A DNA stretch of 64,000 bases from Octopus sinensis (taxonomy: Eukaryota). The notes beneath the pieces were generated by a model. That model did no database searches. It was given only the letters and a program-made list of their open reading frames with translations, and was not told where the DNA came from. The DNA lies in contig NC_042998.1 of assembly GCF_006345805.1 (NCBI RefSeq), positions 45,570,001-45,634,000 on the forward strand, given 5' to 3'. Made by a program: the position numbers and the translations under genes. This document shows, in pieces, positions 20,384 through 63,686 of the stretch (position 1 is the first letter of the stretch; every line of letters begins with the position of its first letter).

Positions 20384-20594
20384 ATGAAAACGACACAAAA
20401 CATGATTCATCCTATTCACGGAAATACACAATTTGAAACGAATTCGACTTCAGAATCTCTGAATAATCAACATCGACTGTACATTGATGACATTAATACT
20501 CAAACATCGATGCGAAAGTTTCGGAGGAAACAACGTTCTCTGTCTGTTCAAATGAACAAGACAGAGAAAGCAATTGACGATAAATATGTTCCCG
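20384..20594 (+). CDS. Probable first coding exon of the SoxH/Sox30-like gene
   Basis: Non-repetitive ORF MKTTQNM...DDKYVP with an upstream in-frame stop at 20285. The CCCG|gtaaat donor is phase 1 and joins the phase-1 acceptor at 35444 without a stop (P-G-T-K-L). Confidence 0.6.
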
Positions 20595-21160
20595 GTAAAT
20601 ATATTTATCATTTCCCTTCCCTACCCTTTTTTCTCTTTTGATTTCTTCATATTTTTTTTCTTTATATTCTTTCATAAAACCCAAACTTCTATAGAAATAG
20701 TGAAATTTTTTTCCGTATGTAATTTAAACCTTCACTACCTATGGAAGTGGAAAAAGAAGTGCAGTGACCGAAAGGTCAAAGTACTAATTGGGTAAAGGGG
20801 AAATTTAAAAAAAAATCAATTGCTTTGTTTTAATAGCTCGGCGCAGACATGACTGTGGTTAAGAAGTTTGCTTTCCATCCACGTGGTTTCTGGTTCAGTC
20901 CCATTGCGTGACATCTTGGGCAAATGTCTTCTACTGTAGCCATGAGCCAACCAAAGCCTTTTGAGAGGATTAGTAAGACAAACTGAAAGAAGCCCGTTAT
21001 ATACATATATTTCTATGTGTTTGTGCCTCCTTATCTTGATATCGTGATAGTTTTAAACGAGTGTCGCTATCATACAATCGATATCATTGTTTCCAATCTT
21101 CCATGAACACATGACCAGCCATGGAGAAATATTATCTTGCTTGGAAAGAGAAAGGATATA

Positions 21161-22050
21161 CATCATCATCATCATCATCATCATCGTTTAACGTCCGCTT
21201 TCCATGCTAGCATGGGTTGGACGGTTCAACTGGGGTCTGGCAAGCCCGAAGGCTGCACCAGGCCAGTCAGATCTGGCAGTGTTTCTACAGCTGGATGCCC
21301 TTCCTAACGCCAACCACTCCGAGAGTGTAGTGGGTGATTTTATGTGCCACCGACACAGGTGCCAGACGAGGCTGGCAGACGGCCACGCTCGGATGGTGTT
21401 TTTTATGTGCCACCGACACAGGTGCCAGACGAGGCTGGCTGACGGCCACGCTCAGATGGTGTTTTCTTATGTGTCACCGACACAGGTGCCAGACGGGGCT
21501 GGCGGACGGCCACGCTCGGATGGTGTTTGTTACGTGCCCTCAGCACGGAGGCCAGTCGTTGCGGTACTGGCTACGATCACGTTCGGATGGTTTTCTTATG
21601 TGCCACCGGCACTGGTACCACAAGGATACAAATTCCATTGATGTTCATCTATTTTGATTTGGTTCGATTTGATTTGATTTGATTCGATTCTCACTTGCCT
21701 CAACAGGTCTTCACAAGTGTCACAAGAAGGAAGGTATGCACAGGTGGACTGACTACGTCCCAGGTAGGGGCCACGGATTATGGCTTCACTAGTCTTGCCG
21801 GGTCTTCTCACGCACAGCATACTTCCATAGGTCTCGGTCTCTAGTCATTTCCATGGTGAGACCTAACGTCCGAAGGTCGTGCTTCACCACTTCGTCCCAG
21901 GTTTTCCTGGGTCTACCTCTTCCACGGGTTCCCTCAACTGCTAGGGATTGGCACTTTCTCACACACCTATCTTCATCCATTCTCGCCACATGACCATACC
22001 AGCGCAATCGTCTCTCTTGCACACCATAGAAATTCTGTTTTGACAAATTC
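21161..22050 (-). mobile_element. RTE-clade LINE 3' end: RT C-terminus plus long 3' UTR with about 60-bp internal repeats and (GAT)n tail
   Basis: ORF 21789-22046 reads RRLRWYGHVARMDEDR...RGRGRPRKTWDEVV, a typical RTE C-terminus. The (cat)n at 21161 is the reverse-complement tail. Confidence 0.85.
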
Positions 22051-22115
22051 CGTCTGAGTACGGAGAAGTGAACATTAAAACGACGAGGACGATGATGGTG
22101 ATGTTTTTTCTACAG

Positions 22116-22159
22116 TGCCATTTAATTTAAACAAGCAGGATTATGTAACTTGTCCAAAG
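22116..22159 (+). other. Candidate 44-nt cassette exon in Sox intron 1 (frame-shifting)
   Basis: Acceptor ttttttctacag| and donor AAG|gtaggt. Open in phase 1 (VPFNLNKQDYVTCPK) but exits in phase 0. Confidence 0.35.
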
Positions 22160-25100
22160 GTAGGTTACAGGGTTTGAAGTTATGGACATTTAACCAGTTG
22201 CCCACCGTCTGAATCTCATTGGCCTTTTATTGTTCATTGTTTTTTTTTCCCATCGCACACTTTATATTCGATGGGAGAGTTAAATGAGAGGTTTTGACGT
22301 GTCTGCCTTTTCCTATGCCATTAATCCTGTTAAAACACACTGCCATTATTCCTGTTAAAACACACTGTCATGATTTTTAACTTGGAAAATAATGAAGTTA
22401 GTAAAATAACTTTGTCGTTATTAAGCTAGTATTTGAAACACAAATTAGCATGAAATATTCATGGAAGTTTTGATTTCGATCATTTTACAACAAGCTGTTT
22501 GTATCATAGAATCGGGAGCAGTCTCAAGTTGCCTGACATCATAAATGGTAACAGCATGAGTGAAGTCAAATAGCTTAAATTGGAAATCAAAAACTAGTTC
22601 ATGGCTTTGCGCGACTTAAGCATACTTTTTATTCTACATTTATTAGCTATCATACATTTATATCTCAAAGAAAACAAAGGACAGATAAGATAGATGGTAT
22701 ATGCCATGAAAATAAAGGGGAGGTAATTGTGCTGAACACTGGGAAATAACAGCTTTGATGTAAAGGAATCATTTACTATTGATTGCTCATTAACCTCATC
22801 GGCGAACAGAATGTTCTTACAAACTATTGATTCTAGGGACAGGAACACAAGCTGCATAATTTTCACATACATACTTTTACTTCTATAGTAAAATGAATTA
22901 TGATTTAAAAGAAATAGCTTCTGTGGACCCCATTCTAAATTTAGTTGTAGAAATTTATCAGAGAACCAGACATCGTGTGATGATTAGTAACGGTTTCAAA
23001 GTTTGGCACAAGGTCAGCAATTTTAGTGGGATGGGATTAGTTGATTACAGAGATCCAGTGCTTAACTGGTTCTTATTTTGTGGCCCCGAAGTGATGGAAA
23101 AGACGACTTTGGTGGCATTTGAACTCAGAACGGTAAGAGCTGGAAGAAATGCCACTAAGTATTTTATCCAATGCACAAACATTCACCTTAGTGTGACACC
23201 CATTACTAATACCCATTAATATGTATTTCTTTATTGCCCACAAGGGGCTAAACTTAGAGGGGACAAACAAGGACAGACAAAGGGATTAAGTCGATTACAT
23301 CAACCCTGAAAGGTTGAAAGGCAAAGTTGACCCTGGCGGAATTTGAACTCTGATCGTAACGGCAGATGAAATACCTATTTCTTTACTACCCACAAGGGGC
23401 TAAACACAGAGTGGACAAACAAGGACAGACAAATGGATTAAGTCGGTTATATCGACTCCAGTGCGTAACTGGTACTTATTTAATCGACCCCGAAAGGATG
23501 AAAGGCAAAGTCGACCTCGGCGGAATTTGAACTCAGAACATAAGACAGATGAAATACCGCTAAGCATTTCGCCTGGCATGCTAACTTTTCTGCCAGCTCG
23601 CTTTTTTCAGTTTCTGTCTACCAAATTCATTCACAAGGCTTTGGCCTTCCTTGGGTTATATTACAAGACATTTACCATAGGTGCCATGAATCAGAGACCA
23701 TGTCGTTGGGAACCAAGCTTCCTACTATGCATCCATGTCTACAATTATCAGTCACTAGTATCATAGAGATTTAGGTCAAACTCAACTAATTCAAAATATT
23801 AAGTGCACCATATTCTGAAATCTGAATGATTTTAAAACAGATTCAAAACAGGTGGTTTATTTAATAACAGAAAATGGCAATAATAATGTTGTAAGAGATA
23901 TATTTGTTGGTATATAAAGAGGTATTGATGTTCAACTGAGGTCTTTTATTAGAAAAAATGATGTAATGTCAAAATGGTGATGGTGATGACCATCATCATA
24001 GTATCATCATCATCATCATCATCATTGGTTGGCATGAGGTTTCATTGTTGTCACCACCACCACCACCACCATCATTGCCATCTTCATCATTATATAACAT
24101 TCACTTTTCCATGCTTGCATGGGTCTCAAGGAGTTCATTGAGGTAGATCTTCTATAGCTGGATGCCTTTTCTGTTGCCAACCCTCATCTGTTTCCAAGCA
24201 AGGTAATATTTTCCCCATGGCTGAGGCATGTTTCTCATGGAAGAGTCGAAATGAACAACACCTCTTGTATGACAGTGATGCTCATTTTACAACCATCATA
24301 TGATGCCAAGGCAAACATACAAACAAACATGCATATGTTTGCATGCATATATAGTCAACAGTTCTATGCACTATGTCTTCTCATAAGACTTTCATTGGCC
24401 CAAGGCTATAACAGAAGGCAAAGCTTCTTAACCACACAGCCATGCCTGCACCTGTAGGTAGGCCTGTCTGTCCTCCCTGTGGGCTTGTGAAATCATAGTT
24501 TTAATTTGAGAGGATTATTTTTGCCTTCTAAATATATTTATGATGAATATTAACTTTTTGTTCCCCAAAATATTAATACAGCTATAGTTAAAGCAAGTTA
24601 TTGTGATTTTTTGATTAAAGCTAGATATTGTCCCTCCTAGCAACTACTAAACTGGACTCTTGTACTATGGCCCTATGCTGATCGAAGCCTTGTGAATGGA
24701 TTTGGTAAACAGAAACTGTTACCTGTGTATGTGTGTGTGTGTGTATCTTTGTTTATAAAATCACATGATGGTTGTAAATGAGCATTGTTGTCATACAAGT
24801 AAGGTTAACGATTTCCAGTCTTGCATGCAAAACATGTTTAGGTCTGAGAAAATATTACCTTGTTTGGAAAGAGAAGGTTGGCAACAAGGAGGTCATCTGT
24901 CAGAAGAAAATCTGCTTCAACGAATTCCATCTGACCATGCAAGCATGAAAAAGTGGACATTCAATGACCATGATGATAACATATATATCATAATCATTAT
25001 CATCATCATCATTATCACACACATGCATGTATACACACACACTCACACACACACACACAGACGCACACACACACATACATACATGCATGCATACATACAT

Positions 25101-25841
25101 GTGTACACATACAGATATACATACATGTCTATACAACAGGTTATACTGGCACTCCATCGGTTACAATGATGAGTGTTGCAGTTGATCTGGTCAACGGAAC
25201 ATCCTACTTGTGAAATTAACAGACATGTGTACCCTTAATGTAGTTCTCAACGAGATTCAATGTGACATAGAATGTGACAAGGCTGGCCCTTTGAAATACA
25301 GGTACTACTCATTTTATGCCAGCTGAGTGGACAGGAGCAATGTGAAATATAGAGCTCTGCTCAAAGACACAATGTACTCTCAGGTATCAAACTCACAGCC
25401 TTATGATCATAAGCCTAACCACTGTGTCCCATGCCTTCACACATAACAGGTTAGATGAATGATTGCTATTGAACAAGCTATAAAATAACACGTAGCACAA
25501 TGACAATGGCAAAATTTGAACATTGGACTTTTAAATCCCAAGTTAAAGCACTGATAATGTTTAGGAAATACAACTAATATACAATTATAACTAGCTATTT
25601 TGCATACTAGTTTATATATAGGTATAATTAACCAATCTGTTAGATAAACAGCCAATTTTAAACATGGTACTCACTCTTATCTCTTAATGCATGTCCTCAT
25701 AAAATGATATCATTAACAGAGTATGATTTACCCAATAATGATGGTTTATTTTGACTAGGAATAAAGCTTCACTTTGCAACCATGTGGTTTTGGGTTCAGT
25801 TCGACTGTGCAACATCTTGAACAAGTACATTATTTACATTA

Positions 25842-26440
25842 TTTACATTTGACGGATATTTGTCCTCATCTTGTTTGTTGTTAACACAATGTTTCAGCCT
25901 TCTTCAGGTGTCTTGGGGAAATTTCGAACCCGGGTTCTCATTCCTAAGGTATTTTTCGATGTTGTTGCTGTTGCTGTTGTTGTTCAGGTCACTGCTTGGA
26001 ATTGAACTTGGAATCTTGGGGTTAGTAGCCCGCCCTCTTAATCACTATGTCATATGCCTGTGGGCAATTATGGAGTGAATTTTAGGGCTTATAAATCTAA
26101 TATTTTTCTATCTTTCCTTAATACCGGTTCCTATATGCTGCTCATATCTGCACTTGGTCTGCTTAGGAGGTTGTTGTGTCCTAGCATATGTGCTGCTTCT
26201 TTTAGTTCTCTGTCTATTATTTTAACTTCATCCCACAGGGGGAGGTGGTTTCCATTTTTCCATACATGATCAGCTATAGCCAATTTATTAATACCTCCTC
26301 GTGTCACAGCTTTGCGATGTTCCTCTACCCTTGTTTTAAGGGGCAGCATGTTTCGCCTTTGTATAACCTACCACAGCTGCATGGGATGGAGTACACACAG
26401 TCTTTGGTCATATTCTCTTCTATTGGTGGTTTTACTTGAA
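25842..26440 (-). mobile_element. Penelope-like element 3' fragment: GIY-YIG endonuclease plus pseudo-LTR
   Basis: Minus-strand frames read CVYSIPCSCGRLYKGET and LKTRVEEHRKAV...AIADHVW. A hammerhead-like motif lies at 25884-25911. Confidence 0.85.
25884..25911 (-). ncRNA. Degenerate type I hammerhead ribozyme motif of the Penelope pLTR
   Basis: Minus strand reads ACAC CUGAAGA A GGCU GAAA CAU U GUGU: 4-bp stem I and intact core, but stem II is apparently collapsed by deletion. Confidence 0.55.
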
Positions 26441-27636
26441 TGAATTTGGTGGATGGAAACTGTGTAGAAGTGTATGTGTGTGTGTGTGGTGTGTGCGTGC
26501 GTGTGTATAGGTGGAGGCATGGATGCATGATTAGAAGTTTGCTTCCTAACCACATGGCTCTGGGTTCAGTTCCACTGCATGGCATCTTGGGTGAGTGGTT
26601 TCTACGATAGCCTCAGGCCAACCTAAGCCTTGTGATTGGATTTGATAGACAGAAACTGAAAGAAGCCCATTGTGTGTGTGTGTGTGTTTGTCTCCTACCA
26701 CCCCTTGACAACTTGTATTGATGTATTTATATATTTACGCCCCTGAAGAGAAGGGCCAAGTGTTGGTATGTGCTTTTGTCAGGGAAGATCCTTGGTAATA
26801 GTGAAACCCAACGATTGAAGCAAATTTGAGGGCTCTAGCTGAGTGTTACTCATGATTATGAGGAGTGTGGTGTGATGGTATTTTTTTTTTTAAATATATG
26901 ATTAGTGGTGTTTGTCTTCTCTTGCTGTTAAAAGTTACAAAGTTAGAATATCTCCATTGGAGAGTGCTTTCAAGGTCTCTATTCTTGGAATCAGTTTTGG
27001 TTTGGCATGTGGTGTAAATGGATGATGAATGGTTGGGGAATATTGAGTAGGAATAAAGAGTAGTGTTGTAATTGTAAGAATGTATGTTGTTGTGTGATGG
27101 CAAATAAGTTATTAATGAATGGGCAACAAAGCTGAACCCTGGGGCCTACTGGTTTTGATAGAATGAGGAACAGAACCAACTTTGTCAACACACATGGTTT
27201 TAGTTCAATAGAAAAGAATATATGTATGGTTACGAGATCCATGCCTTTGCCAAAAACATTACTACTATGAAGTGAAATAGTTTCCACTAAGATTGAAATC
27301 TTCAAATTCTTTGCCCTATGGTATTGGCTTGACTAACAATAATTTTTAAAAAAGGTGACTAACGACAATACTGCTTGAGTGGCACATAAAAAGGCACCAT
27401 TCAAGCATGGTCAATGCCAGTACTGCCTGACTGGCTCTCAAGCCGGTGGCATGTAAAAAGCACCCACTACACTCTTAGAGTGGTTGGCATTAGGAAGGGC
27501 GTCCAGCAGTAGAAACTTTGCCAGATTGGATTGGAGCCTTGTGCAGCATTCTGTCTTGCCAGCCTTCAGTCAAACCATCCAACCCATGCCAGCATGGAAA
27601 GTGGACATTAAACGATAATGATGATGATGATGTCTT

Positions 27637-27860
27637 CAATTCTTTAGCATTTAAACTGGCCATATGTAACTCAAATATTCTACCTGGCTTATGCTAAAAC
27701 TAACCAGATCCAACCACTCACATCTAACCTATAATGCTATGCTAATAAACAATAACATCATCGAAATCTTGAAGCTACAAGATAATACATGATTAGCCCA
27801 AAACAATTTGAATAAATAAACTTTATATTTGACTCAGTAATCTGAATGTTAAAGGGTTAA
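27637..27860. mobile_element. piggyBac-like MITE (related copy at about 47595-47822)
   Basis: Ends resemble (cc)tttagc...gttaaagggTTAA. The same body recurs near 47600-47820. Confidence 0.5.
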
Positions 27861-27880
27861 ATTTTTTATTCTCAGTGAGT

Positions 27881-29390
27881 ATCATCATCATCATTTAACG
27901 TCCGCTTTCCATGTTAGCATGGGTTGGACGGTTCAACTGGGGTCTGGGGAGCCCGAAAGCTGCACCAGTCCAGTCAGATCTGGCAGTGTTTCTACAGCTG
28001 GATGCCCTTCCTAACGCCAACCACTCCGAGAGTGTAGTGGGTGATTTTATGTGCCACCGACACAGGTGCCAGACGAGGCTGGCAAACGGCCACGCTCAGA
28101 TGGTGTTTTTATGTGCCACCGACACAGGTGCCAGACGAGGCTGGCAGACGGCCACGCTCGGATGGTGTTTTTATGTGCCACCGACACAGGTGCCAGATGA
28201 GGCTGGCAAACGGCCACGATCGGATGGTGTTTGTTACGTGCCCACAGCACGGAGGCCAGTCGATGCGGTACTGGCTACGGCCACGTTCGGATGGTTTTCT
28301 TGTGTGCCACGTGCCACCGGCACTGGTACCACAAAGATACAATTCCATTGATGTTCGTCTATTTTGATTTGTTTTGATTTTCACTTGCCTCAACAGGTCT
28401 TCACAAGTGTCACAAGAAGGAAGGTATGCACAGGTGGACTGACTACGTCCCAGGTAGGGGCCACAGGTTATGGCCTGACTAGTCTTGCCGGGTCTTCGGA
28501 TGGTGTTTTTATGTGCCACCGACACAGGTGCCAGATGAGGCTGGCGAACGGCCACGATCGGATGGTGTTTGTTACGTGCCCACAGCACGGAGGCCAGTCG
28601 GTGCGGTACTGGCTACGGCCACGTTCGGATGGTTTTCTTGTGTGCCACCGGCACTGGTACCACAAAGATACAATTCCATTAATGTTCATCTATTTTGATT
28701 TGTTTTGATTTGATTTGATTTGATTTGTTTTGATTTCATTTTGATTTTCACTTGCCTCAACAGGCCTTCACAGGTATCACAAGGGGGAAGGTATGCACAG
28801 GTGGACTGACTACGTCCCAGGTAGGGGCCATGGGATATGGCCTGACTAGTCTTGCCGGGTCTTCGGATGGTGTTTTTATGTGCCACCGACACAGGTGCTA
28901 GATGAGGCTGGCGAATGGCCACGATCGGATGGTGTTTGTTATGTGCCCACAGCACGATGGCCAGTCGATGCGGTACTGACTACGGCCACGTTCGGATGGA
29001 TTTCTTGTGTGCCACAGGCACTGGTACCACAAAGATACAATTCCATTGATGTTCATCTATTTTGATTTGATTTGATTTTCACTTGCCTCAACAGGTCTTC
29101 ACAAGTGTCACAAGAAGGAAGGTATGCACAGGTGGACTGACTAGTCTTGCCGGGTCTTAGGAAGGTGTTTTTATGTGCCACCGACACAGGTGCCAGATGA
29201 GGCTGGCGAACGGCCATGATCGGATGGTGTTTGTTACGTGCCCACAGCACGGAGGCCGGTCAATCGATGCGGAACTGGCTACGGCCACATTCGGATGGTT
29301 TTCTTGTGTGCCACCGGCACTGGTACCACAAAGTGTGTGCCACCGGCACTGGTACCACAAAGATACAGATTCCATTGATGTTCATCTTTG
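27881..29390 (-). repeat. RTE 3' UTR amplified as a head-to-tail array of about 366-bp units
   Basis: The novel junction gggtctt|cggatggtg recurs at about 28497 and 28863, with a variant at about 29158. Each unit contains the about 60-bp subrepeat. Confidence 0.85.
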
Positions 29391-32300
29391 ATTAAATTAA
29401 TTCCAATTTATAACTAGCACTTATTGACCCTGTGTTTGTATGAAGAGAAAAGTTGATCTTGGGGTGTTTAACTTCAGAAGCAATATGAGATTTTATAAGG
29501 TATAAAAAATAAAGTAGGGTGACCCGCTGTGCTTCAGGAGACCTATTGAGTCAAGTACGTCAACATCAACATCAAAATAAAAATCAAATGGCACGTAAAA
29601 AGCACCATCTGAACGTGGCTGATGCCACCGCTGCCTAACTGGCGTCCATGTCGGTGACACGTAAAAAGGAACCAATCAATCATAGCCGTTTGTCAGCCTC
29701 CTCTGGCCCCTGTGCTGGTGGCATGTAAAAAGTACCCACTACACTCACGAAGTGGTTGGTGTTAGGAAGGGCATCCATCTGTAGGATCACTGCCAGATCA
29801 GACTGGAGCCTGGCGCAGCCTCCTGGCTTTCCAGACCTCAGTCGAACAGTCCAACCCATGCTAGCATGGAAAATGGATGTTAAAAGATGATGATGATGAT
29901 GATGATGATGAATATTGGGATAAATTTATTTCAGAAAAATAATAGTTACTGAAATAGACATACAGCCGCTGTTATTTGCCTTAAATTCAATTTCTTGACT
30001 TTTTTTGTGTTTCATACATAAACATGACATTTGGAAAATTGTTATATTCATGTTATTCAGCAGAATTAATGACTCAACTAAAGCAAATAATAGTTGTAAA
30101 TAGAAACTGAAAATAAAACCAGAAGTACCTCCAAATGGGAAATTCCATTCTGATGCATTCACTTTTAATTTAGTAAATAATATTGTTGACAAAGTCACAC
30201 ATAATATAGGACATGGTCACATATAATATAGAGCAAGGTCACACATGACGTAGGACAAGATCACATTGATCTTTTCTGTTTGGCCGCCACTTTTCAATTT
30301 CTTTGACTTTTGTTCCAAATTGATTTCATGTTTGATGTGTTGATTTAGTTTTGTATTGACACGAAATTCATTTCCACCATAAATCAATAATTAAAGAGTT
30401 GATAGCTTTTAAAGTTTGCAAATTTTCGGTAATTTTAGCCAGTCAAAAGCCACAGACATAGAGGTGCCTGTTTCCATGGTAACAAGCCAAGCTGTTACCA
30501 AGTTACTTGGTCATTTTTCGCTTATTAAAAATTCAGAACACATGTGGGATGTGGTGGTCATGACATGTGCTAAAAATAATAGCTAAATAGTCCTTAAATC
30601 ATGTACCAAAATCCTTTTTTTTTAATATATGTAATCATGTGGAGGCGCGTGGCTTAGTGGTTAGGGTGTCAGCATCATGATCATAAGATTGTGGTTTTGA
30701 TTCCTGGATCGGGTGATGTGTTGTGTTCTTGAGCAAAACACTTCATTTCACGTTGCTCTAGTCCACTCAGCTGGCGAAAATGAGTAACGCTGTGATGGAC
30801 TGGGGAACACATACACCATAGAAACTGGGAAACTGGGCTCATTAGCCTGGCTAGGCTTTAAAAGCATGCATATAATACATACGTAATCATATGAATTCCC
30901 ATGTCTGGAATACAAATTTGTAAAATTTTTTGAAAATTCCAAAAAATAAAATGTTATGAGGGGTTATATGGTCAATATTTCATTTGTTTACAGTGGACAA
31001 CACATGCAGTCAGGCACAAAATGACAGCTTCCAAATCCTTTTTTCTGACTGTGTAAAAATGATCAAGCTTTAAACCTCTAACTTTTTTTTAAAATTTTCT
31101 GGAAAAAGTGAATTAGACCCTGAGATTCAGTGTGGCAAATTACATCAATATACCAAATTTTCAAATTTTCACTAAACTTTAGAATTTCCACAGGTGCAGG
31201 CAAACAGAAAAGAATCCAATCATGCATTCATTATAGATAATTTCAGAATTGCACACTAGCTCAGGAATGAAATTTGCTTAGTGGGTGCAAACCCAGTTCC
31301 AAAATTTTTTACAAACAAGGTCTTATTGTTCTTTTTTTATTTGGTTTTGTTCTTTGAGAAGAAACCTAACTTCAAGCTACTTTTTACATACTGTTTTCTA
31401 AACTTGAGAGAAATAAGTAATTGTGTAAATTTCAGTTTTTGCACCCCCCCCCCAAATGTTAGGAGATGTGTTTGCACACCCTGTTTCTTGGCCCATGGAA
31501 TTGCATTGTTAACATGGCAGGTCCTTTTCTTTCAACATAGGTTGAGTCTTTTGGTCACCATTGGAATCTATTTCCATTGTGTCTTTTCAATAGGAATTTC
31601 CATTGTCATTGCTCTGATGAATTTTCAGGTGTAGCATCCTCTGCCAAGACCTTTAAATGTGTCACCCACTTCTCTTCTCAGGGGCATTCTTTCTCTGTCA
31701 GCTTCCTGTTAGTCATAAGTCCTTTTATTTTAATGGCTTCTTCCTTTGAACTGCTGCTTGCTGGAACTCATTACTATCATTTTGTTTTTCTCTGGTTTAC
31801 AATGTTCATTCCTTTAATCCTTCTGTAAAATGACATTTTTTGAATTTGCAGGTTTCTTCTTTTCCTTCTTTTTATCCCTTATGCTTCAGTGGCTTCAAGC
31901 CTTGTTTTGGGACAAAATCATGTAAAAAAAAATAATAAAATGGTAAAATAAATACTCTATGTTTAGCATGTTCCAGAACCTATTTTATTTAGTGTGAATT
32001 GGGTTAAAATTGCTAAGTTAAGGCCAGTTCACTTCACTTATACTGCTGCTGCTGTTGCTGCTGCTGCTACTGTTACTACTACTACTACTACTGAGAACAA
32101 TGTGAATGTTGAGGTTTCGTTTTGTTTTTCTATGGCTATTTTTGTTTTGTATTCATGTATGAAATAAATATTTATTGTGTAGTATAATTAGTTTATAACA
32201 ACAAACATGATATACATTACAGTTTTCGCATCTTTTCTGTTGCTGTCAGTTTTCTATTTTTAAAAAATTTTGTTCCATTTGTTTTCAAATTTGGGATACA

Positions 32301-35443: not shown

Positions 35444-35698
35444 GAACCAAGCTAACTTACAAGGCAAGTGGAAGTAGCTCTCGTAATAAAAATGGGAACA
35501 TTAAGCGTCCAATGAATGCTTTTATGGTATTTGGACGTACCTACAGATCGACTTTAATGAAAATGTTTCCAACAGCATCCAATTCCCAAATCAGCATTTA
35601 CTTGGGGGAGATTTGGCATAAAATGTCTCCAGCTCAACAGAAACCATATTTTGATGAATCCAATCGAATTAAATATAAACACCGCAAAGACTATCCAG
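35444..35698 (+). CDS. Sox30: HMG-box exon of a Sox transcription factor, group H (Sox30-like)
   Basis: Acceptor tacag| and donor CCAG|gtaatt, 255 nt, phase 1-1. Encodes GTKLTYKASGSSSRNKNGNIKRPMNAFMVFGRTYRSTLMKMFPTASNSQISIYLGEIWHKMSPAQQKPYFDESNRIKYKHRKDYP. RPMNAF is the Sox signature. NG(N/H)(I/V)KRPMNAF and PGWVY match SOX30 as I recall it. Confidence 0.85.
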
Positions 35699-40492: not shown

Positions 40493-40810
40493 CCAACGGT
40501 CATTTTCACGATTACAGCCAACGAATCTAGTCAACGCACAAGACAGCCATTATGCTCCTCCCCACAAAACACCACCATGTGGACTCTGTTGAGACTAGTA
40601 AGAAACAATTATGAACTTTTTTATTACTCTTAACTTTTAAAAATATTTTTGCTAAGTTTCGTTTTTTCAAGAAGAACTGAAACATGTGAAATCTCTAAGA
40701 AAATTAAAATTTATCTTATATAGTGGCGTTTTCAAACTTCTTTTTTATAAATATATACCCACTTGTATGCCACCTACACTTTTTCTAAATATATATATAT
40801 ATATATATAT

Positions 40811-41630
40811 CATCATCATCATCATCATCATTTAACGTCCGCTTTCCATGCTAGCATGGGTTGGACGGTTCAACTGGGGTCTGGGGAGCCCGAAGGCTGC
40901 ACCAGGCCAGTCAGATCTGGCAGTGTTTCTACAGCTAGATGCCCTTCCTAACGCCAACCACTCTGAGAGTGTAGTGGGTGATTTTATGTGTCACCGACAC
41001 AGGTGCCAGACGAGGCTGGCGAACGGCCACGCTCGGATGGTGTTTTTATGTGCCACCGACACAGGTGCCAGACGAGGCTGGCGAACGGCCACGCTCGGAT
41101 GGTGTTTTTATGTGCCACCGACACAGGTGCCAGACGAGGCTGGCGAACGGCCACGCTCAGATGGTGTTTTTATGTGCCACCGACACAGGTGCCAGAGAAG
41201 GCTAGCAGACGACCACGCTCGGATGGTGTTTTTTATGTGCCACCGACGCAGGAGCCAGATGAGGCTGGCGATCGGCCACGATCGGATGGTGATTGTTACG
41301 TGCCCACAGCATGGAGGCCAGTCGGTGCGGCACTGGTTACGGCCACGTTCGGATGGTTTTCTCGTGTGCCACCGGCACTGGTACCACATAGATACAAATT
41401 CCATTGATGTTCATCTATTTTGATTTTGTTTGATTTTTTGATTTTTTGATTTGATTTGATTCGATTTTCACTTGCCTCCACAGGTCTTCACAAGTGTCAC
41501 AAGAAGGAAGGTATGCACAGGTGGACTGACTACGTCCCAGGTAGGGGCCACGGGTTATGGCCTGACTAGTCTTGCCGGGTCTTCTCACGCACAGCATACT
41601 TCCATAGGTCTCGGTCTCTAGTCATTTCCA
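40811..41630 (-). mobile_element. RTE LINE 3' end with five about 60-bp subrepeats
   Basis: Colinear with 21161-21850. Confidence 0.85.
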
Positions 41631-44665: not shown

Positions 44666-45013
44666 GATGGGTGTATCGACCGAATATTCGCCAACGTTTT
44701 GAAGGTACATTTAATGATATCCAAGTTGACAACAAACTGACAGAGTCAATCCTACCCAAAATAATCTGTGACCAAAAGCAACAAATCCCTCAGATGGCAG
44801 TAATACCCATTATTTATCCCCTTTCCAACAACACAATGACCCTAACAATGCCAGCTGAAGGATCAATTAACTCTAATCCTGAACCCAACAACTTAGAAAA
44901 TCCGATGCTCAATACTGAGTTTGTTTCTGCTAATAGTGTCCAAATGTGCCAAGATCAAATGTATTCAGATGTTTGTTCATGGGAATCCAGTTGGTCAAAC
45001 CAAGATATTTCTG
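44666..45013 (+). CDS. Sox30: Sox exon 3: end of the HMG tail plus a P/S/N-rich region
   Basis: Acceptor tacag|GA TGG GTG TAT CGA CCG completes YPG-WVYRP. Donor TCTG|gtaagt. 348 nt, phase 1-1, open frame. Confidence 0.88.
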
Positions 45014-45100: not shown

Positions 45101-46362
45101 TTAATGTCTGTTTTCCATGATGGCATGGGTTGGATGGTTTGACTGGGGTCTGGGAAGCCAGGAAGCTGCACCAGGCACCAGCCTGATCTGGCAGTGTTTC
45201 TACAGCTGGATGCCCTTCCTAATGCCAACCACTCCGTGAGTGTAGTGGGTGCTTTTTATGTGCCACCGGCACAGGTGCCAGGGGAGGCTGGCAATGGCCA
45301 CAATCAGTTGGTGCTTTTTATGTGCCACCAGCATGGAAGCCAGTCATGGCGGCGCTGGTATCAGCCATGTTTGGATGGTGCTTTTACATGCCACTGGCAC
45401 AGGTATCACATCTACAATTTCCATTTGATTTTTTGATATATGATGCTAATTGAAGGCAGGTGGCTCAGTGGTTAGAGTGTCAGGCTCATAATCATGAGGT
45501 AGTGAGTTTGATTCCTGGACTGGGTTGTGTATTGTACTCTTGAGTAAAACACTTTATTTCACGTTACTTCAGTTCACTCAGCTCTTCCATAAACAACCTT
45601 GCCTGGACTTGTGTTTTGGAGGGGAACTTTCTAGGTGCAATCCCATGGTCATTCATGACTGAAGGAGATCGTTTCTGATGTTAATGGAGAATGAATGTTG
45701 GAGGGAAAAGGTCTCTATACTGATAGAGGAGTATACCTATGACAGAGAAAGATTTAAGAGATGAGGAAGAAGTGGTGAAGTTAGATCTAAGACTACTGGT
45801 TCTCACAAGTGAGATGAGAAAAGACCTATATGGTAAACCTGTTCAGTCTATGCTAGTCTGGAAAGATGTTAGGACATTGATGTCGAGGTTAAAGGTTATA
45901 TATATCATCATCTATCTATATCTATAAAAGGTAGGATATGTGTGTGTGTGTGTGTATGGGAATGAATTTATGCACATCCACAAATTAGCACTAGGAGGAC
46001 ATTGGTCACAACCATGGCTGTGCTTTTGTCTGTCAACTTATTTTTCTTGAGGCACCCGTGGATAGCGGTAAAAATCGATTTTCAACCATAACTTTTACCA
46101 ATTTTGAATGTCGGTGAAATCTGTAAGTTTGCTAACATGAGTTAAGTCTCCTTGCAATGGTGAACAGTATTGTGTGTGTTGATGTGTGTGTGTGTGTGTG
46201 CGTGTGTGTGTGTGTGAGGGAGAAAGAGAGTGACAGCATACATTTTAAAAAATTTATTTTTCCTTGCATCTTTTTTGAGTGATTGACTGAGAGAGAGAGT
46301 GATAGCATAACACCTCTTTCTCTCTCTCTCTCTGTGAAAGACACTAAAAAAAGATGCGAGAA

Positions 46363-49605: not shown

Positions 49606-50615
49606 AGATAAGACAGTAAGGTGTGATTTGAGGGAGATTGGCTGCTATTTCTACCATGTCTAGCTGCCATGTAGGGGTCTCCCTCATAGGCTCATACATA
49701 CATATATACATAGATAAGACAGTAAGGTGTGATTTGGGGGAAATTTGGCTGCTATTTCTACCAGGTCTAGCTGCCATGTAGGGGTCTCCCTCATAGGCTC
49801 ATACATACATATACATAGATAAGACAGTAAGGTGTGATTTGGGGGAAATTTGGCTGCTATTTCTACCAGGTCTAGCTGCCATGTAGGGGTCTCCCTCATA
49901 GGCTCATACATACATATATACATAGATAAGACAGTAAGGTGTGATTTGGGGGAAATTTGGCTGCTATTTCTACCAGGTCTAGCTGCCATGTAGGGGTCTC
50001 CTCATAGGCTCATACATACATATATACATAGATAAGACAGTAAGGTGTGATTTGGGGGAAATTTGGCTGCTATTTCTACCAGGTCTAGCTGCCATGTAGG
50101 GGTTTCCCTCATAGGCTCATACATACATATATACATAGATAAGACAGTAAGGTGTGATTTGGGGGAAATTTGGCTGCTATTTCTTCCAGGTCTAGCTGCC
50201 ATGTAGGGGTTCCCTCATAGGCTCATACATACATATATACATAGATAAGACAGTAAGGTGTGATTTGGGGGAAATTGGCTGCTATTTCTACAGGTCTAGC
50301 TGCCATGTAGGGGTCTCCCTCATAGGCTCATACATACATATATACATAGATAGACAGTAAGGTGTGATTTGGGGGAAATTTGGCTGCTATTTCTACCAGG
50401 TCTAGCTGCCATGTAGGGGTCTCCCTCATAGGCTCATACATACATATATACATAGATAAGACAGTAAGGTGTGATTTGGGGGAAATTTGGCTGCTATTTC
50501 TACCAGGTCTAGCTACCATGTAGAGGTCCCCCTCATTGGCTCATATATATATATACATACATAAGACAGTAAGGTGTGATTTGAGGGAGATTTGGCTGCT
50601 GTTTCTACCAGGTCT
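49606..50615. repeat. Tandem minisatellite, about 106-bp unit, 9 full copies plus a partial one
   Basis: agacagtaaggtgtgattt starts at 49611, 49717, 49822, 49929, 50035, 50142, 50248, 50352, 50459 and 50564. Confidence 0.95.
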
Positions 50616-51793: not shown

Positions 51794-51835
<42 letters not shown>

Positions 51836-53881: not shown

Positions 53882-53913
<32 letters not shown>

Positions 53914-53975
53914 GTGATAATGATGATAGCCAATATTTTATTCATTCGACTCCTTTTCTCTCTATATAATTTTAG

Positions 53976-54215
53976 GAAGCAGTTATATTTCTCCTTGGAC
54001 AAACCTAAGAAGTGTAGTGTCATATTCCACAGCTGAGACATCTCAAGGTCTTCAGTATAGCACTAAATATATGCTAAGTTCTGCTGCTACTCTCAATGCA
54101 AACTGCTACAGTCCTGCATTATTAAATGACCAAATTCAGTCTAGTCCTCCTGAATATTGGCCACTCGAGGAACAGTATAAAGCTCAGCAAACTTCTCCAA
54201 TGGATTCATTTCAAG
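53976..54215 (+). CDS. Sox30: Sox exon 4
   Basis: Acceptor tttag|GA AGC and donor CAAG|gtaagc. 240 nt, phase 1-1. Encodes GSSYISPWTNLRSVVSYSTAETSQ...PMDSFQ. Confidence 0.78.
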
Positions 54216-57200: not shown

Positions 57201-58129
57201 GGTGGCGAGCTGGCAGAAACGTTAGCACGCCGGGCGAAATGCTTAACGGTATTTCGTCTGCCACTACGTTCTGAGTTCAAATTCCGCTGAGGTCAACTTT
57301 GCCTTTCATCCTTTCGGGGTTGATTAAATAAGTACCAGTTACACACTGGGGTCGATATAATCGACTTAATCCGTTTGTCTGTCCTTGTTTGTCTTCTCTG
57401 TGTTTAGCCCCTTGTGGGTAGTAAAGAAATAGGTATTTCGTCTGTCGTTACATTCTAAGTTCAGATCCCACCAAGGTCAACTTTGTCTTTCATCCTTTTG
57501 GGGTCGATAAATTAAGTACCAGTTGTGTACTGGAGTCGATCTAATTGACTGCCCCTCTCTGAAATTTCGGGCCTTGTGCCTAGAGTAGAAAAGAATATAT
57601 TCTTTCTTGTACTACAAACTTTATTCCCTTTGCCTATCTATATTCTCTTTGCCTGTCTAACAAACCAGCAATTGCATATTAAATTCCAATATTCTCATAC
57701 TTATAATTTATCTTTTACTTTTTACTTATTTCAGTCATAGGACTGTGACCATGCTAGGACATTGTCCTTGAAGGGTTTTACTTGAATGAACCCCAGTACT
57801 TATTTTTCTTTTAAGCCTAGCACTTATTCTATCTGTCACTTATGCTAAACTGCTAAATCATAGGGATGTAAACAAACCAACACCAGTTGTCTAGTGGTGG
57901 TTCAGGACAAATACAAACCCAAAGACACTTCCCCATACATACACATACAATGGGCTTCTTTCAGTTTCCGTCTACCAAATCTATTCACAAAGCATTAGTC
58001 GGACCAGGGCTATAGTAGAAGACACTTGTCCAAGATGCCACACAGTAGGACTGAACCTGGAACCATGTGGTTGGAAAGAAAACTTCTTACCACACAGCCA
58101 CAACATGTTTTTTTTCTTTTCTCTTGCAG

Positions 58130-58351
58130 ACCTTTCCAGTTTATCAACAACTCTAAAAACTGACGAAAGCAGTGAATCAAATGAAAATTTATCTTTTCTT
58201 GAATATATGCATGGTCAGGAATACCTCTTCAATTCAACAATGCCCGTTTCTGAGGAACCATTTATCTCTCCTGATAAGCTGTCTCCTATTTTACATAAGT
58301 GTTCTGACCAAAGTATATTGGAAATTCCTGAAAGCTATTCAAATTCAAAAG
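58130..58351 (+). CDS. Sox30: Sox exon 5
   Basis: Strong polypyrimidine tract ending ttgcag|, donor AAAG|gtaata. 222 nt, phase 1-1. Encodes DLSSLSTTLKTDESSES...SYSNSK. Confidence 0.78.
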
Positions 58352-58619
58352 GTAATAATCTATGCCAAAGTATTTCAAATTTTTTTATTTTACCTTCTTA
58401 ATGGTTCTGCACACCCTTTCTTCTTTATAGCTCTTTTAGCTATAACTTTTCTTTCTTTTTTCTTTGTATTTTGTTCTCTGTACTGTGTATGCACTTTAGG
58501 TTTTCATTGCTGTCTTTGTTTACTTGAATTACTGTTGCTTTTTGTCTCCTTTTTACCCTGTATCAAGGTTTAGATTTGGTTGAGAAGCAAGCTTCTTACC
58601 ACACAGTCACATTTGTGCC

Positions 58620-58650
<31 letters not shown>

Positions 58651-59077
58651 CATCATCATCCATCATCATCATCATCATCGTTTAACGTCCGTTTTCCGCG
58701 CTAGCACGGGTTGGACGGTTTGACTGGGGTCTGGGAAGCCAGGAGGCTGCTCCAGGCTTCAGTCTGATCTGGCAGAGTTTCTACGGCTGGATGCCCTTCC
58801 TAACACCAACCACTCTGCGAGTGGAGTGGGTGCTTTTTACGTGCCACCTGCACAGGTGCCAGGGTGGGTCTGGCATCGATCACGATCGGTTCGAGCTTTT
58901 AACGTGCCAGCCAAGGTGGCGCTGGCATCGGTCACGTTCGGATGGTGCTTTTTGGGGGTGCAGGTAATATAGGGAAGCACCAGTGGGGAGGGTTGGGGTG
59001 AGGAACGATGACAGCTAGGGTTGATGCAGGTTCATATACATATATATATATACATATACATATATATATACATATAC

Positions 59078-59125
<48 letters not shown>

Positions 59126-59155
59126 ATACATATACATATATATATATACATATAC

Positions 59156-59189
<34 letters not shown>

Positions 59190-59219
59190 ATATATACATA
59201 TACATATATATACATATAC

Positions 59220-59382
59220 TTTATTTTAAGCAGCAGAAAATTCAACAAAATCTGTTACTCTGAGTTTCTCGTTGCCGTTCATCAGACAGTTTTTGCTAGA
59301 ATGTATATGAAACTGTCTGATGAACGGCAACGAAAAACTCAGAGTAACAGATTTTGTTGAATTTTCTGCTGCTTAAAATAAA
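59220..59382. repeat. Palindrome with about 73-bp arms containing a degenerate hammerhead-like motif
   Basis: 59220-59292 is the reverse complement of 59310-59382. Arms read CUGU CUGAUGA acggcaacga (G/A)AAACUCAGAGUA ACAG. Confidence 0.9.
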
Positions 59383-59797
59383 GCATATTACTCTACCACT
59401 GGTATTTGAGTACTCTTTTTTCCACCTTGTTTCACATTTATGTGTTTACTCCGGTATAATACATATATATATACAATATATATATATATATACATATACA
59501 TATATTATATACATATATATATATATATATACATATAATATATATACATATATATATATACATATATATTATATACATATACAATATATATATACATATA
59601 TATATATAGGCACAAATGTGGCTGTGTGGTAAGAAGCTTCCTTCCCAACCATATGGCTTTGAGTTCAGTCCCACTGCATGCCATCTTGGGCAAGTGTCTT
59701 CTACTATTGCCTCAGCCAACCAAAACCTTATAACTGTATATGAAAGATGGAAACTGAAAGAAGCCTGTCGTGTATATATATATATATATAGAGAGAG

Positions 59798-60141
59798 AGA
59801 AAATACTAGAGTGAAAAAACGACAGAAGGCTTGAATGTTAAAAAATATATATATTTGCGTCAATATGTCTGAAGAATATTAGAAAATTTAAAAAAAAAAA
59901 TTTTTTTCCTCTTATAATGACATAAATTAAAAGAAATACCGGTTTCGCGTGTAGCTTTTCAAATTCTTGTGAGAAATTTGAAAAGCTACATGCGAAACCG
60001 GTATTTCTTTTAATTTATGTCATTATAAGAGGAAGAAATTTTTTTTTTTTAATTTTCTAATATTCTTCAGACATATTGACGCAAATATATATATTTTTTA
60101 ACATTCAAGCCTTCTGTCGTTTTTTCACTCTACTATTTTCT
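59798..60141. repeat. Near-perfect palindrome with about 170-bp arms and 4-nt loop
   Basis: Symmetry centre at 59969-59970 (caaattct tgtg agaaatttg). The arms differ mainly in poly-A/T run length. Confidence 0.92.
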
Positions 60142-61126
60142 ATATATTCACCCATGTGCTTTCACAAACCAACTTTCTTATCTATCTATATATATATATA
60201 TATATATATTAAAATATAGATATATAGAAAACAAAATTATTTTATTCTACACAGGTAGAAAAATAGAAAAAAGAAGTTGAAAATGCACTAGGATTTGTTT
60301 AGGTTCATTTCACAGATTTCTCTTGCAAAACAGTTGCAGCATGGCTCCACGTCTTTCTATCTCAACTTTTGAAGATCAGAAAAATCTGTGAAAATGGTTA
60401 AGTCTTTAAAAATTTATGAATCCCAGTACATTTTCAACTTCTTTTTTCTGTGTGTGTGTGTGTGTGTGTGTGTTTGTCCCCCATCACTGCTTGACAACCA
60501 GTGTTGGTGTGTTTACATCCCCATAACTTAGTTCAGCAAAAAAAAACAAAAAAAGAAACAAACAAGACTACTGGGGTCGATTCACTCGACTAAAAAGTTC
60601 TTCAAGACTGCCAGTAATAATCTGTAAAACAACAAAGAAAGGCATTACTTCTCAGAAGCTGGGTGCTACTTTTGACTCATGCTCTCTCTCTCTCTCTCTC
60701 TCTCAATATATATATATATATATATATATGGGCGCAGGAGTGGCTGTGTGGTAAGTAGCTTGCTTACCAACCATATGGTTCTGGGTTCAGTCCCACTGTA
60801 TGGCACCTTGGGCAAGTGTCTTCTACTACAGACGCGGGCTGACCAAAGCCTTGTGAGTGGATTTCGGAGATGGAAACTGAAAGAAGCCCATTGTATGTAT
60901 GTGTGTGTATATGTTTGTGTGTCTGTGTTTGTCCCCCCCAACATCGCTTGACAACCGATGGTAGTGTGTTTACATCCCTGTAACTTAGCAGTTTGGCAAA
61001 AGAGACCGACAGAATAAGTACTTGGCTTACAGAGAATAAGTCCTGGGGTTGATTTGCTCGACTAAAGGCAGTGCTCCAGCATGGCCACAGTCAAATGACT
61101 GAAACAAGTAAAAGAGTATATATGTA

Positions 61127-61764
61127 CTAGCAGTATCGCCCGGCGTTGCTCGGGTTTGTAAGGGAAATAACTATATAAGCATTTTTAGAGAGTTATAGCC
61201 AAAAAATAGCAAAAAATGCATTAAAAATGGAAAAAATATGATGGTAAATTTTTTTTTAAATCGTTGACTCATCGTAGACATTTTTAGAGAGTTACTTCCC
61301 TTATATAATAGCGAAAAAATGCATTAAAATGGAAAAAAAACGATGGTAAATTTTTTTTTAAAATCGTAGACTCATGTAGACGCTTTCTTAGCCATTTCTG
61401 TTTTGGTGTCTTCAAGCCATGAAGTCGTTGTTCTAAAAGAACACTGGTCTCCTTGACAACGCATTACGACGTTGATTTCCTTACACTCCCTTCCCCACAG
61501 GTGCAGGTGTGAGCGTGGACGCCAACTCTGCCGCCATCGACACACGAAAAATTATGCATTAAAATGGAATAAAAAATGATGTTAAATTATTTTTAAAATC
61601 GTAGACTCATCGTAGACGCGCGCTAATATTCAGACGGGCTCGATATGAATCACGACTATAAGCTACCCGAATTTGGTGAAACTGCACCGCAAAATGTGGG
61701 AGTAGTTAGGAATCTAAATCGAAGGGGACAGACACTCACACAACTACAGTTTTATATATATAGA
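61127..61764 (-). mobile_element. Non-autonomous Helitron, family 1 (longer variant)
   Basis: Minus strand TC...CTAG. Shares both ends with 51399-51793. Confidence 0.8.
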
Positions 61765-61799
61765 TATACATAGTGCAGTAGTGGTGAGATGTGACAGCA

Positions 61800-62160
61800 A
61801 AGAAAAGCATACGTTCACTCTCTGCATGCAATTAGACTCGGAAAGTTCGTGAGGAACCCATTGACCCAATTTGCTGACTTTTCCGATAGCACACAGGTCT
61901 CAATGAATGGTTGAATGACCAAATCCAAGCTTCTCTGCTAGTTCCTCAACAGTTACGATGAGATTTTATTCCACCAGGGTTTTCAGGATGTCCTTGTCGA
62001 GTTCTACAGATCTTTCAGGATGAGGCTCGTCTTCTAGGCTGTAGTTTATGGCTCGGGATTTCTGGAACCACCATTGACACTGCCTTACGCTTATTGTCCA
62101 ATCCCCATATACTGCATTAAATATTCTTTGCACACATTTATATTCTGTTATTCTTTTATA
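61800..62160 (-). pseudogene. Old mariner transposase N-terminal fragment
   Basis: Minus-strand frame reads QWWFQKSRAINYSLEDEPH...LGQWVPHELS with stops. Confidence 0.7.
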
Positions 62161-62193
62161 TGTTTCAGCCTTGAGGTTGTGGCCATGCTGGAT

Positions 62194-62231
<38 letters not shown>

Positions 62232-62462
62232 TATCTGTCTGACTGTCTGTATGTATATATGTATATGTATGTGTGTGAACAATAATATTTTCAACAGATG
62301 TGTTGCAAATGTATCTGATTGTTCTCAAGCTTCAATACTGTGTGTGTGTGTGTATGTGTGTGTGTGTATGTATGTATGTATATGTATGTATGTATGTATG
62401 TATATGTATGTATGTATGTATGTGTGTATGTATGTATGTGTGTGTATGTATGTGTTTGTGTA

Positions 62463-62493
<31 letters not shown>

Positions 62494-63122
62494 ATGTATG
62501 AGTGTATGTTTACTTTATTACTAACACAAGCCACTACGGTTATTTAATGTAAAGTCTTCCTCAAATCACTCTCTCTCTCGCTATTTACTCTCTTCCAAGA
62601 ACATTTTCACTCACTCTTAGCTCTTAGCTTCCCATACATTTTACTCATGTATCTATCAGCGTCATAGACAGAATACTTTCAGTTTAGTCTTCCTCAAATC
62701 ACTCTGTCGCTATTTACTTTCATTTTATTCGTTGCACACTGTGTGTGTGCGTTTGCGTGTGGTGTAAACCAGACTAAGAAAAGCATTTGACACACACACC
62801 AGAATGTGAGTTTTCTGTAAATTTTGCTTAATTGGAGTTTAAATTTTAAAAACTGGACCTGGCATGACGCGATGCATTCTACTCTTAAAAATGCTAGGTA
62901 AATTGTAATTGAAGAAATCCTATATTGTAGATTTCTATAACTCCCAAAGGGAGGCAGATAAAATCTCCATTGAAAAATCTCCTTCAACAAATTGCATGGA
63001 AATGTGGACATTACACAATGACATTAAAATGTGGATATTAAACAGTGGCAGCAACAATCATCATCATAGTCGTCGTCATCTTCCTCCTCCTCCTCATTAT
63101 CATCATCATCATCATGATAATG

Positions 63123-63156
<34 letters not shown>

Positions 63157-63213
63157 TAATAATAATAATGATAATAATAAATTCATTTTGGGTTATGATT
63201 TGATTATCTACAG

Positions 63214-63319
63214 GTGAGAATTTTTTTTCTGTTAAAGATCTAGATGTCTTGGATGGATTAAAAGAAAAGTTAGACGACTGTCTTTCAGTTGACAACATAC
63301 CACAGCTTGACATTGGCAG
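63214..63319 (+). CDS. Sox30: Sox exon 6 (either spliced onward beyond the window, or terminal with TGA at 63321-63323)
   Basis: Acceptor ctacag|GT GAG is phase 1. Encodes GENFFSVKDLDVLDGLKEKLDDCLSVDNIPQLDIG, followed by CAG|gtgagt. Confidence 0.65.
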
Positions 63320-63686
63320 GTGAGTATTGTTATTCTAATAATTTTTAATGAGGTTTACCAATATAATTCTCCAAATTGGATGATGATAATTATGACAATC
63401 ACTTTTACAAAAATACCAATTTCTTATATAACACCAGAATTCTACTGATTCCATAATTAAAGAATCATTAGGCGAGTGATTCTGAGTGCTTGAGATTATA
63501 ATACAATTGATGTCGTTCCTCTACTACAATAGTGAACCCATCCTTTCAAATTCACAAAACACTCCTCAGGTATATAGTGCTTACACTGCTTACAATAATG
63601 AGTAGCACCTGCCTATGATATTAAGTCACAAATATGTCTATTGGATTAGTGAAAGTTATGTATTCTGACTGTTCAGTACCAGTAAA

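Follow-up and report, generated by a model that had tools for sequence, protein, structure and literature searches.

SOX30 is required for mammalian spermiogenesis. Its molluscan counterpart SoxH is testis-biased in bivalves such as the Pacific oyster, and a scallop study reports that SoxH is required for spermiogenesis in that animal as well (PMC13219418). Octopus was named among the molluscs known to have SoxH in a 2026 paper, and XP_036368794.1 of Octopus sinensis and XP_052832677.1 of Octopus bimaculoides were classed as Sox-H in 2025 in a study that counts exactly one Sox-H per Octopus genome, namely the gene treated here (PMC12530298, Table S6). We analyzed a stretch of 64,000 nucleotides of the O. 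sinensis genome (contig NC_042998.1; hereafter the window) in which an earlier note had recognized an octopus SoxH orthologue. We conclude with high confidence that this gene, at about 45.59 to 45.64 Mb of CM016860.1, is the single-copy SoxH (Sox30-type) gene of O. sinensis and likely a testis factor. The finding is correct but already known, given that the gene is annotated in RefSeq and published as Sox-H and that testis bias has been reported.

Compared with the SoxH proteins of bivalves (Argopecten irradians AiSoxH, XP_069140565.1, and those of Mizuhopecten, Crassostrea, and Mactra), the octopod HMG box is 53% to 56% identical and shares the diagnostic residues, the PGWVY(Q/R)P tail, the pre-HMG motif, and the position of an intron within the box (PMC13219418), and testis-biased expression has been reported on both sides. 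The two also differ. At about 490 residues against 694 to 1063 in bivalve SoxH, the octopod protein is half the size or less, its signature reads MVF instead of MVW, and similarity outside the HMG region is undetectable. The octopod gene also evolves slowly, whereas bivalve Sox-H has been reported to be unusually divergent (PMC12530298). With human SOX30, the octopod box has ISV/ISI-x-LG, KPY(Y/F)DE, and PGWVY-x-P in common, but the vertebrate-specific motifs of PMC13219418 have no counterpart in the octopod protein and the flanking regions are unrelated.

The HMG box groups with SoxH

When the box of the window was compared with the PDB using phmmer, human SOX30 (7jjk) scored 94.6 bits with 53% identity over the box, while other true SOX chains reached 63.9 bits at most and an SRY/HMGB1 two-box fusion obtained 77.7 bits, a score summed over two boxes. 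Reciprocal queries with the boxes of SOX4, SOX17, and SOX5 returned SOX30 as the most distant SOX. When 1.84 billion representative proteins were scanned exhaustively with HMMER, the top named relatives were Argopecten AiSoxH (1,010 residues; PMC13219418), SoxH of Mizuhopecten, SOX-30 of Mactra, and a Gigantopelta protein classed as Sox-H in PMC12530298. For identities and trees, we used a gap-free alignment of 75 columns with PDB-verified reference boxes and named database proteins, comprising 11 SoxH references plus the octopods and 14 references from groups A to F, and built trees by neighbor-joining with split-based bootstrap support. The box of the window is 50% to 59% identical to SoxH boxes, 35% to 44% to those of groups A to F, and 30% to 33% to LEF1, CIC, and HMGB1. 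The split that separates SoxH and the octopods from groups A to F received 98.2% bootstrap support, with octopods falling inside groups A to F in none of 1000 replicates.

Individual residues, the gene structure, and the sequence preceding the box point the same way. If a position is called diagnostic when at least 70% of SoxH proteins share a residue that is never seen in groups A to F, the octopod box carries five of the six SoxH-diagnostic residues (Y16, A27, G68, W69, and V70) and a conservative I for V at the sixth; the residues H28, K34, F51, Y69, and K70, which are near-invariant in groups A to F, are all missing. The box is interrupted by a phase 1 intron after ...YPG and before WVY, likewise in Argonauta, and the open reading frames (ORFs) of gastropod-like and sea-cucumber homologues stop at DYPG, matching this position, which has been described for SoxH as "strictly conserved ... 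across bilaterians" (PMC13219418). The NCBI Conserved Domain Database lists the box as "HMG box Sox-30" according to PMC12530298 Table S6. Upstream of the box, octopod, scallop, and abalone SoxH have the motif PGTxxTYKxxGxxxRNKxG in common (octopod VPGTKLTYKASGSSSRNKNGNIKRP aligned with scallop MPGTHMTYKTPGATFRNRHGKVKRP and abalone VPGTGDRYRTPGSSFRNKSGNVKRP); the similarity to the scallop and abalone proteins reaches about 25 residues upstream of the box and then ends. We infer that this is "motif 6" of bilaterian SoxH (PMC13219418).

Several observations weigh against this grouping. Our trees were inferred by neighbor-joining on 75 columns and not by maximum likelihood, and with LEF1, CIC, and HMGB1 as outgroups, monophyly of SoxH drops to 14% to 37% bootstrap support. 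This weak support results from the root wandering within a SoxH grade and is a caveat on the SoxH group overall, not on the octopod sequence. The Sox signature reads RPMNAFMVF (8 of 9 positions) and not ...MVW in all four octopods, with the Phe codon at 35533-35535 of the window. Finally, the identity to the SRY box of 37% to 41% falls below the classical 50% rule, though this rule fails to separate SoxH members because scallop SoxH (36% to 43%) and human SOX30 (48% to 55%) also lie at or below it. A hagfish protein with two HMG boxes (P0123) likewise has Phe in place of the near-universal signature Trp in each of them.

The identification as the octopus SoxH orthologue is upheld by the SOX30 score, the box identities, the bootstrapped split, the intron position, and the pre-HMG motif. 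Neither outcome that the earlier note would have counted as a refutation occurred: the box lies outside Sox groups A to F and outside the non-Sox HMG proteins, and gene models from four species link its exons.

Exon structure of the gene

Six coding exons lie on the + strand between positions 20384 and 63319 of the window, all bounded by AG/GT and joined in frame without stops, with introns 1 to 5 all in phase 1. Together with the seventh exon, which we found in CM016860.1, the gene comprises the following parts:

20384-20594, + strand: coding exon 1, MKTTQNMIHPIHG...DDKYVP and the first base of a Gly codon; donor G/GTAAAT, phase 1
20402, + strand: alternative start ATG, better conserved than the ATG at 20384
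35444-35698, + strand: coding exon 2, pre-HMG motif (P)GTKLTYKASGSSSRNKNG and HMG box residues 1-68; the box starts at 35497
44666-45013, + strand: coding exon 3, end of the HMG box (final 11 residues, WVYRPNIRQRF, 44666-44700) followed by an octopod-specific region
53976-54215, + strand: coding exon 4, SSYISPWTNLRSVVSYSTA...MDSFQ; AG/GT, phase 1-1
58130-58351, + strand: coding exon 5, DLSSLSTTLKTDE...ESYSNSK; AG/GT, phase 1-1
63238-63319, + strand: coding exon 6, DLDVLDGLKEKLDDCLSVDNIPQLDIG and two bases of an Arg codon; donor in phase 2
63320-64000, + strand: first 681 bases of intron 6; donor GTGAGT at 63320
64986-65085 (window-equivalent), + strand: coding exon 7, RWMAYLNQPEQFDEQTLELFFSNSSDPELTDTY*; 33 codons and stop

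Exon 2 has the acceptor CAG/GA and the donor G/GTAATT at 35698/35699, both in phase 1, encodes RPMNAF at 35506-35523 (+ strand), and matches Pfam HMG_box with E = 1.2e-19. Its end at ...KDYPG and the opening of exon 3, (G)WVYRPN, reproduce the split of the box between YPG and WVYRP that the earlier note had described. The chain of six exons contains 453 codons with the exon 6 acceptor at 63238 and 461 codons, corresponding to RefSeq isoform X1, with the alternative in-frame acceptor at 63214, so that the at least 460 codons claimed for it are recovered with the latter. An acidic C-terminal peptide had also been noticed and is present in exon 6 (DLDVLDGLKEKLDDCLSVDNIPQLD at 63237-63311). What did not hold is the end of the gene at 63323: the TGA at 63321-63323 sits inside the strong splice donor CAG/GTGAGT, and exon 6 ends at 63319 and is spliced to exon 7, which begins 986 bases beyond the end of the window. 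Neither exon 7 nor the alternative C-terminus of the O. vulgaris model described below matched anywhere within the window. The full gene thus has seven coding exons, six of which are inside the window, and encodes a protein of about 485 to 493 residues. Nested genes were not seen in the introns, where ORFs of at least 130 residues are derived from repeats, and Rfam gave no hits at gathering score.

Orthologues in other octopods

Bases 10384-64000 of the window match 53,617 bp of record CM016860.1 (GCA_006345805.1) without mismatch, from which it follows that the window is CM016860.1:45,570,001-45,634,000. The protein encoded in the window is identical to O. sinensis XP_036368794.1 (isoform X1) over 460 of 460 residues and to O. 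vulgaris CAI9718507.1 over 446 of 446, while 4 residues differ from O. bimaculoides LOC106884225 (XP_052832677.1). The exhaustive scan returned a sole near-full-length relative, GAB1604967.1 of Argonauta hians (480 residues, "SOX-14-like"), whose alignment with our model covers residues 7-453 of the latter at 89% identity, and the Octopus proteins of the same gene were found with the full-length protein as query. Ten more scan matches proved to be fish, insect, fungal, or unnamed proteins, with no additional cephalopods among them. The first two word-index protein searches had returned only short ORF-like proteins (up to 170 residues) and missed the Octopus and Argonauta proteins, and exact-sequence look-ups with the ORF of the HMG exon gave no match.

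Pieces of GAB1604967.1 map one-to-one onto the six exons of the window. The Argonauta gene has seven exons of 193, 255, 348, 243, 222, 82, and 100 nt, and those in the window measure 193 (counted from the ATG at 20402), 255, 348, 240, 222, and 82 nt. The exon structure is the same in both genes, with phases conserved as well as lengths. The Argonauta gene spans 7.5 kb and that of O. sinensis 44.7 kb, a difference that is all intron. The O. sinensis RefSeq gene is the same as the gene described here, except that the window lacks exon 7, and gene models in four octopod species independently join exactly these exons. In both Argonauta and O. vulgaris, a RhoGAP gene lies downstream in tail-to-tail orientation, a conserved micro-synteny.

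The earlier note had warned that small exons in a repeat-rich span could easily be mis-annotated. This fear proved justified only in part. The RefSeq models of O. sinensis and O. bimaculoides, each with several isoforms, are correct, but the O. vulgaris model ends in 76 residues (SPAHICKHF...) that are unrelated to the other species and probably represent a mis-predicted last exon, and the product names, considered further below, are wrong as well.

Purifying selection and a conserved upstream block

We compared the gene codon by codon with its Argonauta hians orthologue, for each exon and for the HMG box and the remainder separately. The ratio of nonsynonymous to synonymous substitution rates (dN/dS) is 0.057 for the whole comparison, with values of 0.005 for the HMG box and 0.069 for the remainder, at a synonymous divergence (dS) of about 1.0 that is near saturation and makes these ratios approximate. 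Across all six exons, dN/dS ranges from 0.008 to 0.115. Together with the full identity to an annotated O. sinensis protein, this places the exon chain well outside what chance would produce. Exon 1 is 88% identical to its Argonauta counterpart at the amino acid level (and identical to O. sinensis XP_036368794.1), exon 2 96.6% (dN/dS 0.008), exon 4 82% (0.028), and exon 5 91% (0.052), including an identical stretch of 42 residues; for exon 3, dN/dS is 0.095, and the 82 nt of exon 6 equal the length of Argonauta exon 6. All six exons are clearly under strong purifying selection. A pseudogene was considered and rejected in view of a dN/dS of 0.06 and frames that are intact in four species.

Conservation extends beyond the coding sequence into one further feature:

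19893-20383, + strand: conserved non-coding block, about 490 bp long, adjoining the coding start on its upstream side

In blastn, this block together with exon 1 matches the Argonauta hians locus with 79% identity over 741 bp. The pairwise alignment of the block has a mean column identity of 85% with long invariant runs, a conservation that exceeds that of synonymous sites in the coding exons (proportion of synonymous differences, pS, 0.55). The block is likely a promoter with 5' untranslated region, or possibly an enhancer. The same pairwise alignment bears on the translation start. The ATG at 20384, though chosen by RefSeq, is missing in Argonauta, and the one at 20402 is probably the conserved start codon.

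Predicted alternative splicing of the HMG box tail

RefSeq isoforms of O. sinensis differ in the acceptor of exon 6, with X1 using 63214, which adds the eight codons of GENFFSVK, and X2 using 63238. Isoform X4 skips the whole of exon 3 (116 codons), which is flanked by phase 1 introns on either side. An internal acceptor in exon 3 would instead give a start at 44705 and delete GWVYRPNIRQRFE, as in O. bimaculoides X4. Both the predicted skipping of exon 3 and the use of its internal acceptor delete the C-terminal WVYRP tail of the HMG box. It is conceivable, though we consider it rather doubtful, that the upstream block is a deeply conserved promoter or enhancer specific to the germ line and that the tail-less predicted isoforms are natural variants, DNA-binding-impaired or dominant-negative, which tune the activity of SoxH. 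Neither the block nor the tail-less isoforms are described in the papers examined.

Predicted structure and probable role in the testis

AlphaFold models only the region of approximately residues 80-150 with confidence, as a three-helix HMG box (predicted local distance difference test, pLDDT, of 83 to 98), and predicts the remainder to be disordered, with weak helices at 25-50, 393-405, and 421-435, of which the last is amphipathic and corresponds to the acidic segment DLDVLDGLKEKLDDCL. Even though synonymous sites are saturated, long segments beyond the box show no difference between Octopus and Argonauta, which argues that these stretches are functional; they would most likely recruit cofactors or activate transcription. 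By analogy with human SOX30 and scallop AiSoxH, the HMG box is expected to bind ACAAT-like sites in the minor groove and to bend the DNA. The octopod-specific remainder would be a mostly disordered region with several short, perfectly conserved segments that include the putative acidic amphipathic helix near the C-terminus. Published expression suggests that the gene acts in the testis, where, like SOX30 and scallop SoxH, it would most likely switch on the post-meiotic (spermatid) program.

The expression in question is that of O. sinensis "Sox30" (EVM0007650), with 66.8 fragments per kilobase per million (FPKM) in testis versus 0.40 in ovary (PMC11202624, 2024). The proposal of a male germ-line gene agrees with this published testis bias, but the agreement stops short of the locus itself, since EVM0007650 is not tied to it: we found no supplement or primer that connects the two, and the link runs solely through the count of one Sox-H per Octopus genome (PMC12530298), which counts against the assigned role. 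So does the fact that similarity to bivalve, gastropod, and vertebrate SoxH is not detectable outside the HMG region, and functional equivalence beyond DNA binding is therefore assumed.

Both points leave some room for a SoxH orthologue whose main role is not specific to the male germ line, for example a broader developmental or somatic one, as do the octopod-specific nature of the non-HMG parts and the several predicted isoforms in which the end of the HMG box is changed or missing, a hint of regulatory complexity. We nevertheless regard such a role as unlikely. Each Octopus genome has a single Sox-H (PMC12530298), O. sinensis has one "Sox-30-like" gene with a strong testis bias (PMC11202624), and testis-restricted expression of SoxH is the rule from vertebrates to bivalves.

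Less probable still is that this SoxH orthologue is the primary, Z-linked and dosage-sensitive sex-determining gene instead of a downstream germ-cell factor. Sex in octopuses follows a ZZ/Z0 system with an unknown trigger (PMC10925132), and in bivalves the high sequence divergence of Sox-H has led to its proposal as a candidate for primary sex determination (PMC12530298). The octopod protein, by contrast, evolves slowly (dN/dS 0.06), and the scallop study found limited support for a sex-determining role (PMC13219418). The Z of O. bimaculoides has been identified as chromosome 17 and that of O. sinensis as "formerly chr20" (PMC10925132). The SoxH gene itself is found on CM016860.1 of O. sinensis (207.9 Mb), CM046602.1 of O. 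bimaculoides (192.5 Mb), and OX597815.1 of O. vulgaris (215.6 Mb). Each of these records comes first or second in the accession series of its assembly and has about double the length of the N50. No paper that maps the chromosome accessions was found. The Z-chromosome papers mention no Sox gene, and no statement in them placing SoxH on the Z was found on looking for Sox, HMG, or Dmrt. The gene is thus probably autosomal and not on the Z, an assignment that follows only from accession order and chromosome size, which weakens it. Because the gene is apparently autosomal, SoxH would more likely act downstream, in carrying out male germ-cell differentiation, than as the primary sex switch.

Product names and other assignments of the box

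The names given to this gene in databases suggest another identity altogether. In O. sinensis, its products are called "transcription factor Sox-3-B-like" (XP_036368794.1 and isoforms X2-X4) and "sox-2-like", in O. bimaculoides "Sox-19a" and "uncharacterized LOC106884225", in Argonauta "SOX-14-like", and in O. vulgaris "hypothetical". Taken at face value, the RefSeq and GenBank names would make it a SoxB-group gene (Sox2/3/14/19-like) with a neural or early developmental role, and SoxB boxes are indeed nearest among the references of groups A to F (40% to 44% identity). We give this identity very little credence and regard it as refuted. The box obtains 60 bits with SOX2 but 94.6 with SOX30, the octopods never grouped with A to F in 1000 bootstrap replicates, and none of the SoxB-type features of the box (K34, H28, F51, and the DYKY tail) or of the other near-invariant residues of groups A to F (Y69 and K70) is present, with SoxH residues in their place; the intron position and the label "HMG box Sox-30" are those of SoxH. 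The product names are misleading, pointing to the wrong (SoxB-type) Sox group, and look like automatic best-hit labels.

A non-Sox HMG-box factor of the TCF/LEF or Capicua type that merely resembles SoxH is just as hard to credit, since the similar box ends of LEF1 (YPGWSARD, with the same ...PGW...) and CIC (HPDWKW) and the 7% of bootstrap replicates in which octopods join the outgroups face identities of 31% to 33% to LEF1 and CIC versus 50% to 59% to SoxH, scores of 43.5 bits (LEF1) and 50.5 to 53.2 bits (CIC) versus 94.6 for SOX30, and the presence of RPMNAFMV together with the pre-HMG motif and the intron position of SoxH.

Repeats and multi-box proteins

Upstream of the gene, the window contains the degraded pol of a long terminal repeat (LTR) retrotransposon at 6331-9189 (- strand), split over three overlapping ORFs with Pfam matches to aspartyl protease, RNase H-like RVT_3, DUF7047, and, weakly, an integrase core. 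A GC-rich stretch at about 4000-12000 has 46% GC versus about 38% elsewhere in the window. A mariner-type transposase fragment is found at 15327-15959 (- strand; Pfam Transposase_1, E = 2.3e-31) as an ORF of 210 residues. A dispersed repeat family with a 62- to 63-bp minisatellite occurs at 21100-21700, 27850-29400, 40750-41620, 45140-45450, and 58690-58970 and thereby in several introns of the SoxH gene, and a separate 107-bp tandem array of 9.5 copies occupies 49606-50615. Repeats of these kinds fill the SoxH introns, which are roughly 5 to 20 times longer than those of Argonauta.

Outside the octopods, metagenome contigs (ENA ERZ25071447; 6489-6671 and 10172-10429) contain a eukaryotic SoxH exon that is almost identical to its counterpart in the vent snail Gigantopelta aegis and, about 3.5 kb upstream of this exon, a second, degenerate HMG-like stretch; the Gigantopelta "Sox-H" of 1,535 residues has a weak additional HMG match. 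Four high-ranking proteins of the scan (P0122, P0124, P0126, and P0127), from fish and ENA contigs, carry three to six tandem SoxH-like or HMG boxes, which is unusual for Sox-type boxes and unrelated to the octopod gene.

Significance

Our analysis links the window with one particular annotated gene and with accessions already published, and shows that the product names in four octopod annotations refer to the wrong Sox group. The exact exon coordinates, the splice alternatives, and the upstream block are useful for the design of probes, guides, and reporters, and the block, if it should prove to be a promoter or enhancer specific to the germ line, would be usable as a testis driver for cephalopod transgenics. 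Being a conserved transcription factor of male germ cells, SoxH/Sox30 makes a natural downstream candidate in the recently discovered ZZ/Z0 sex system of cephalopods.

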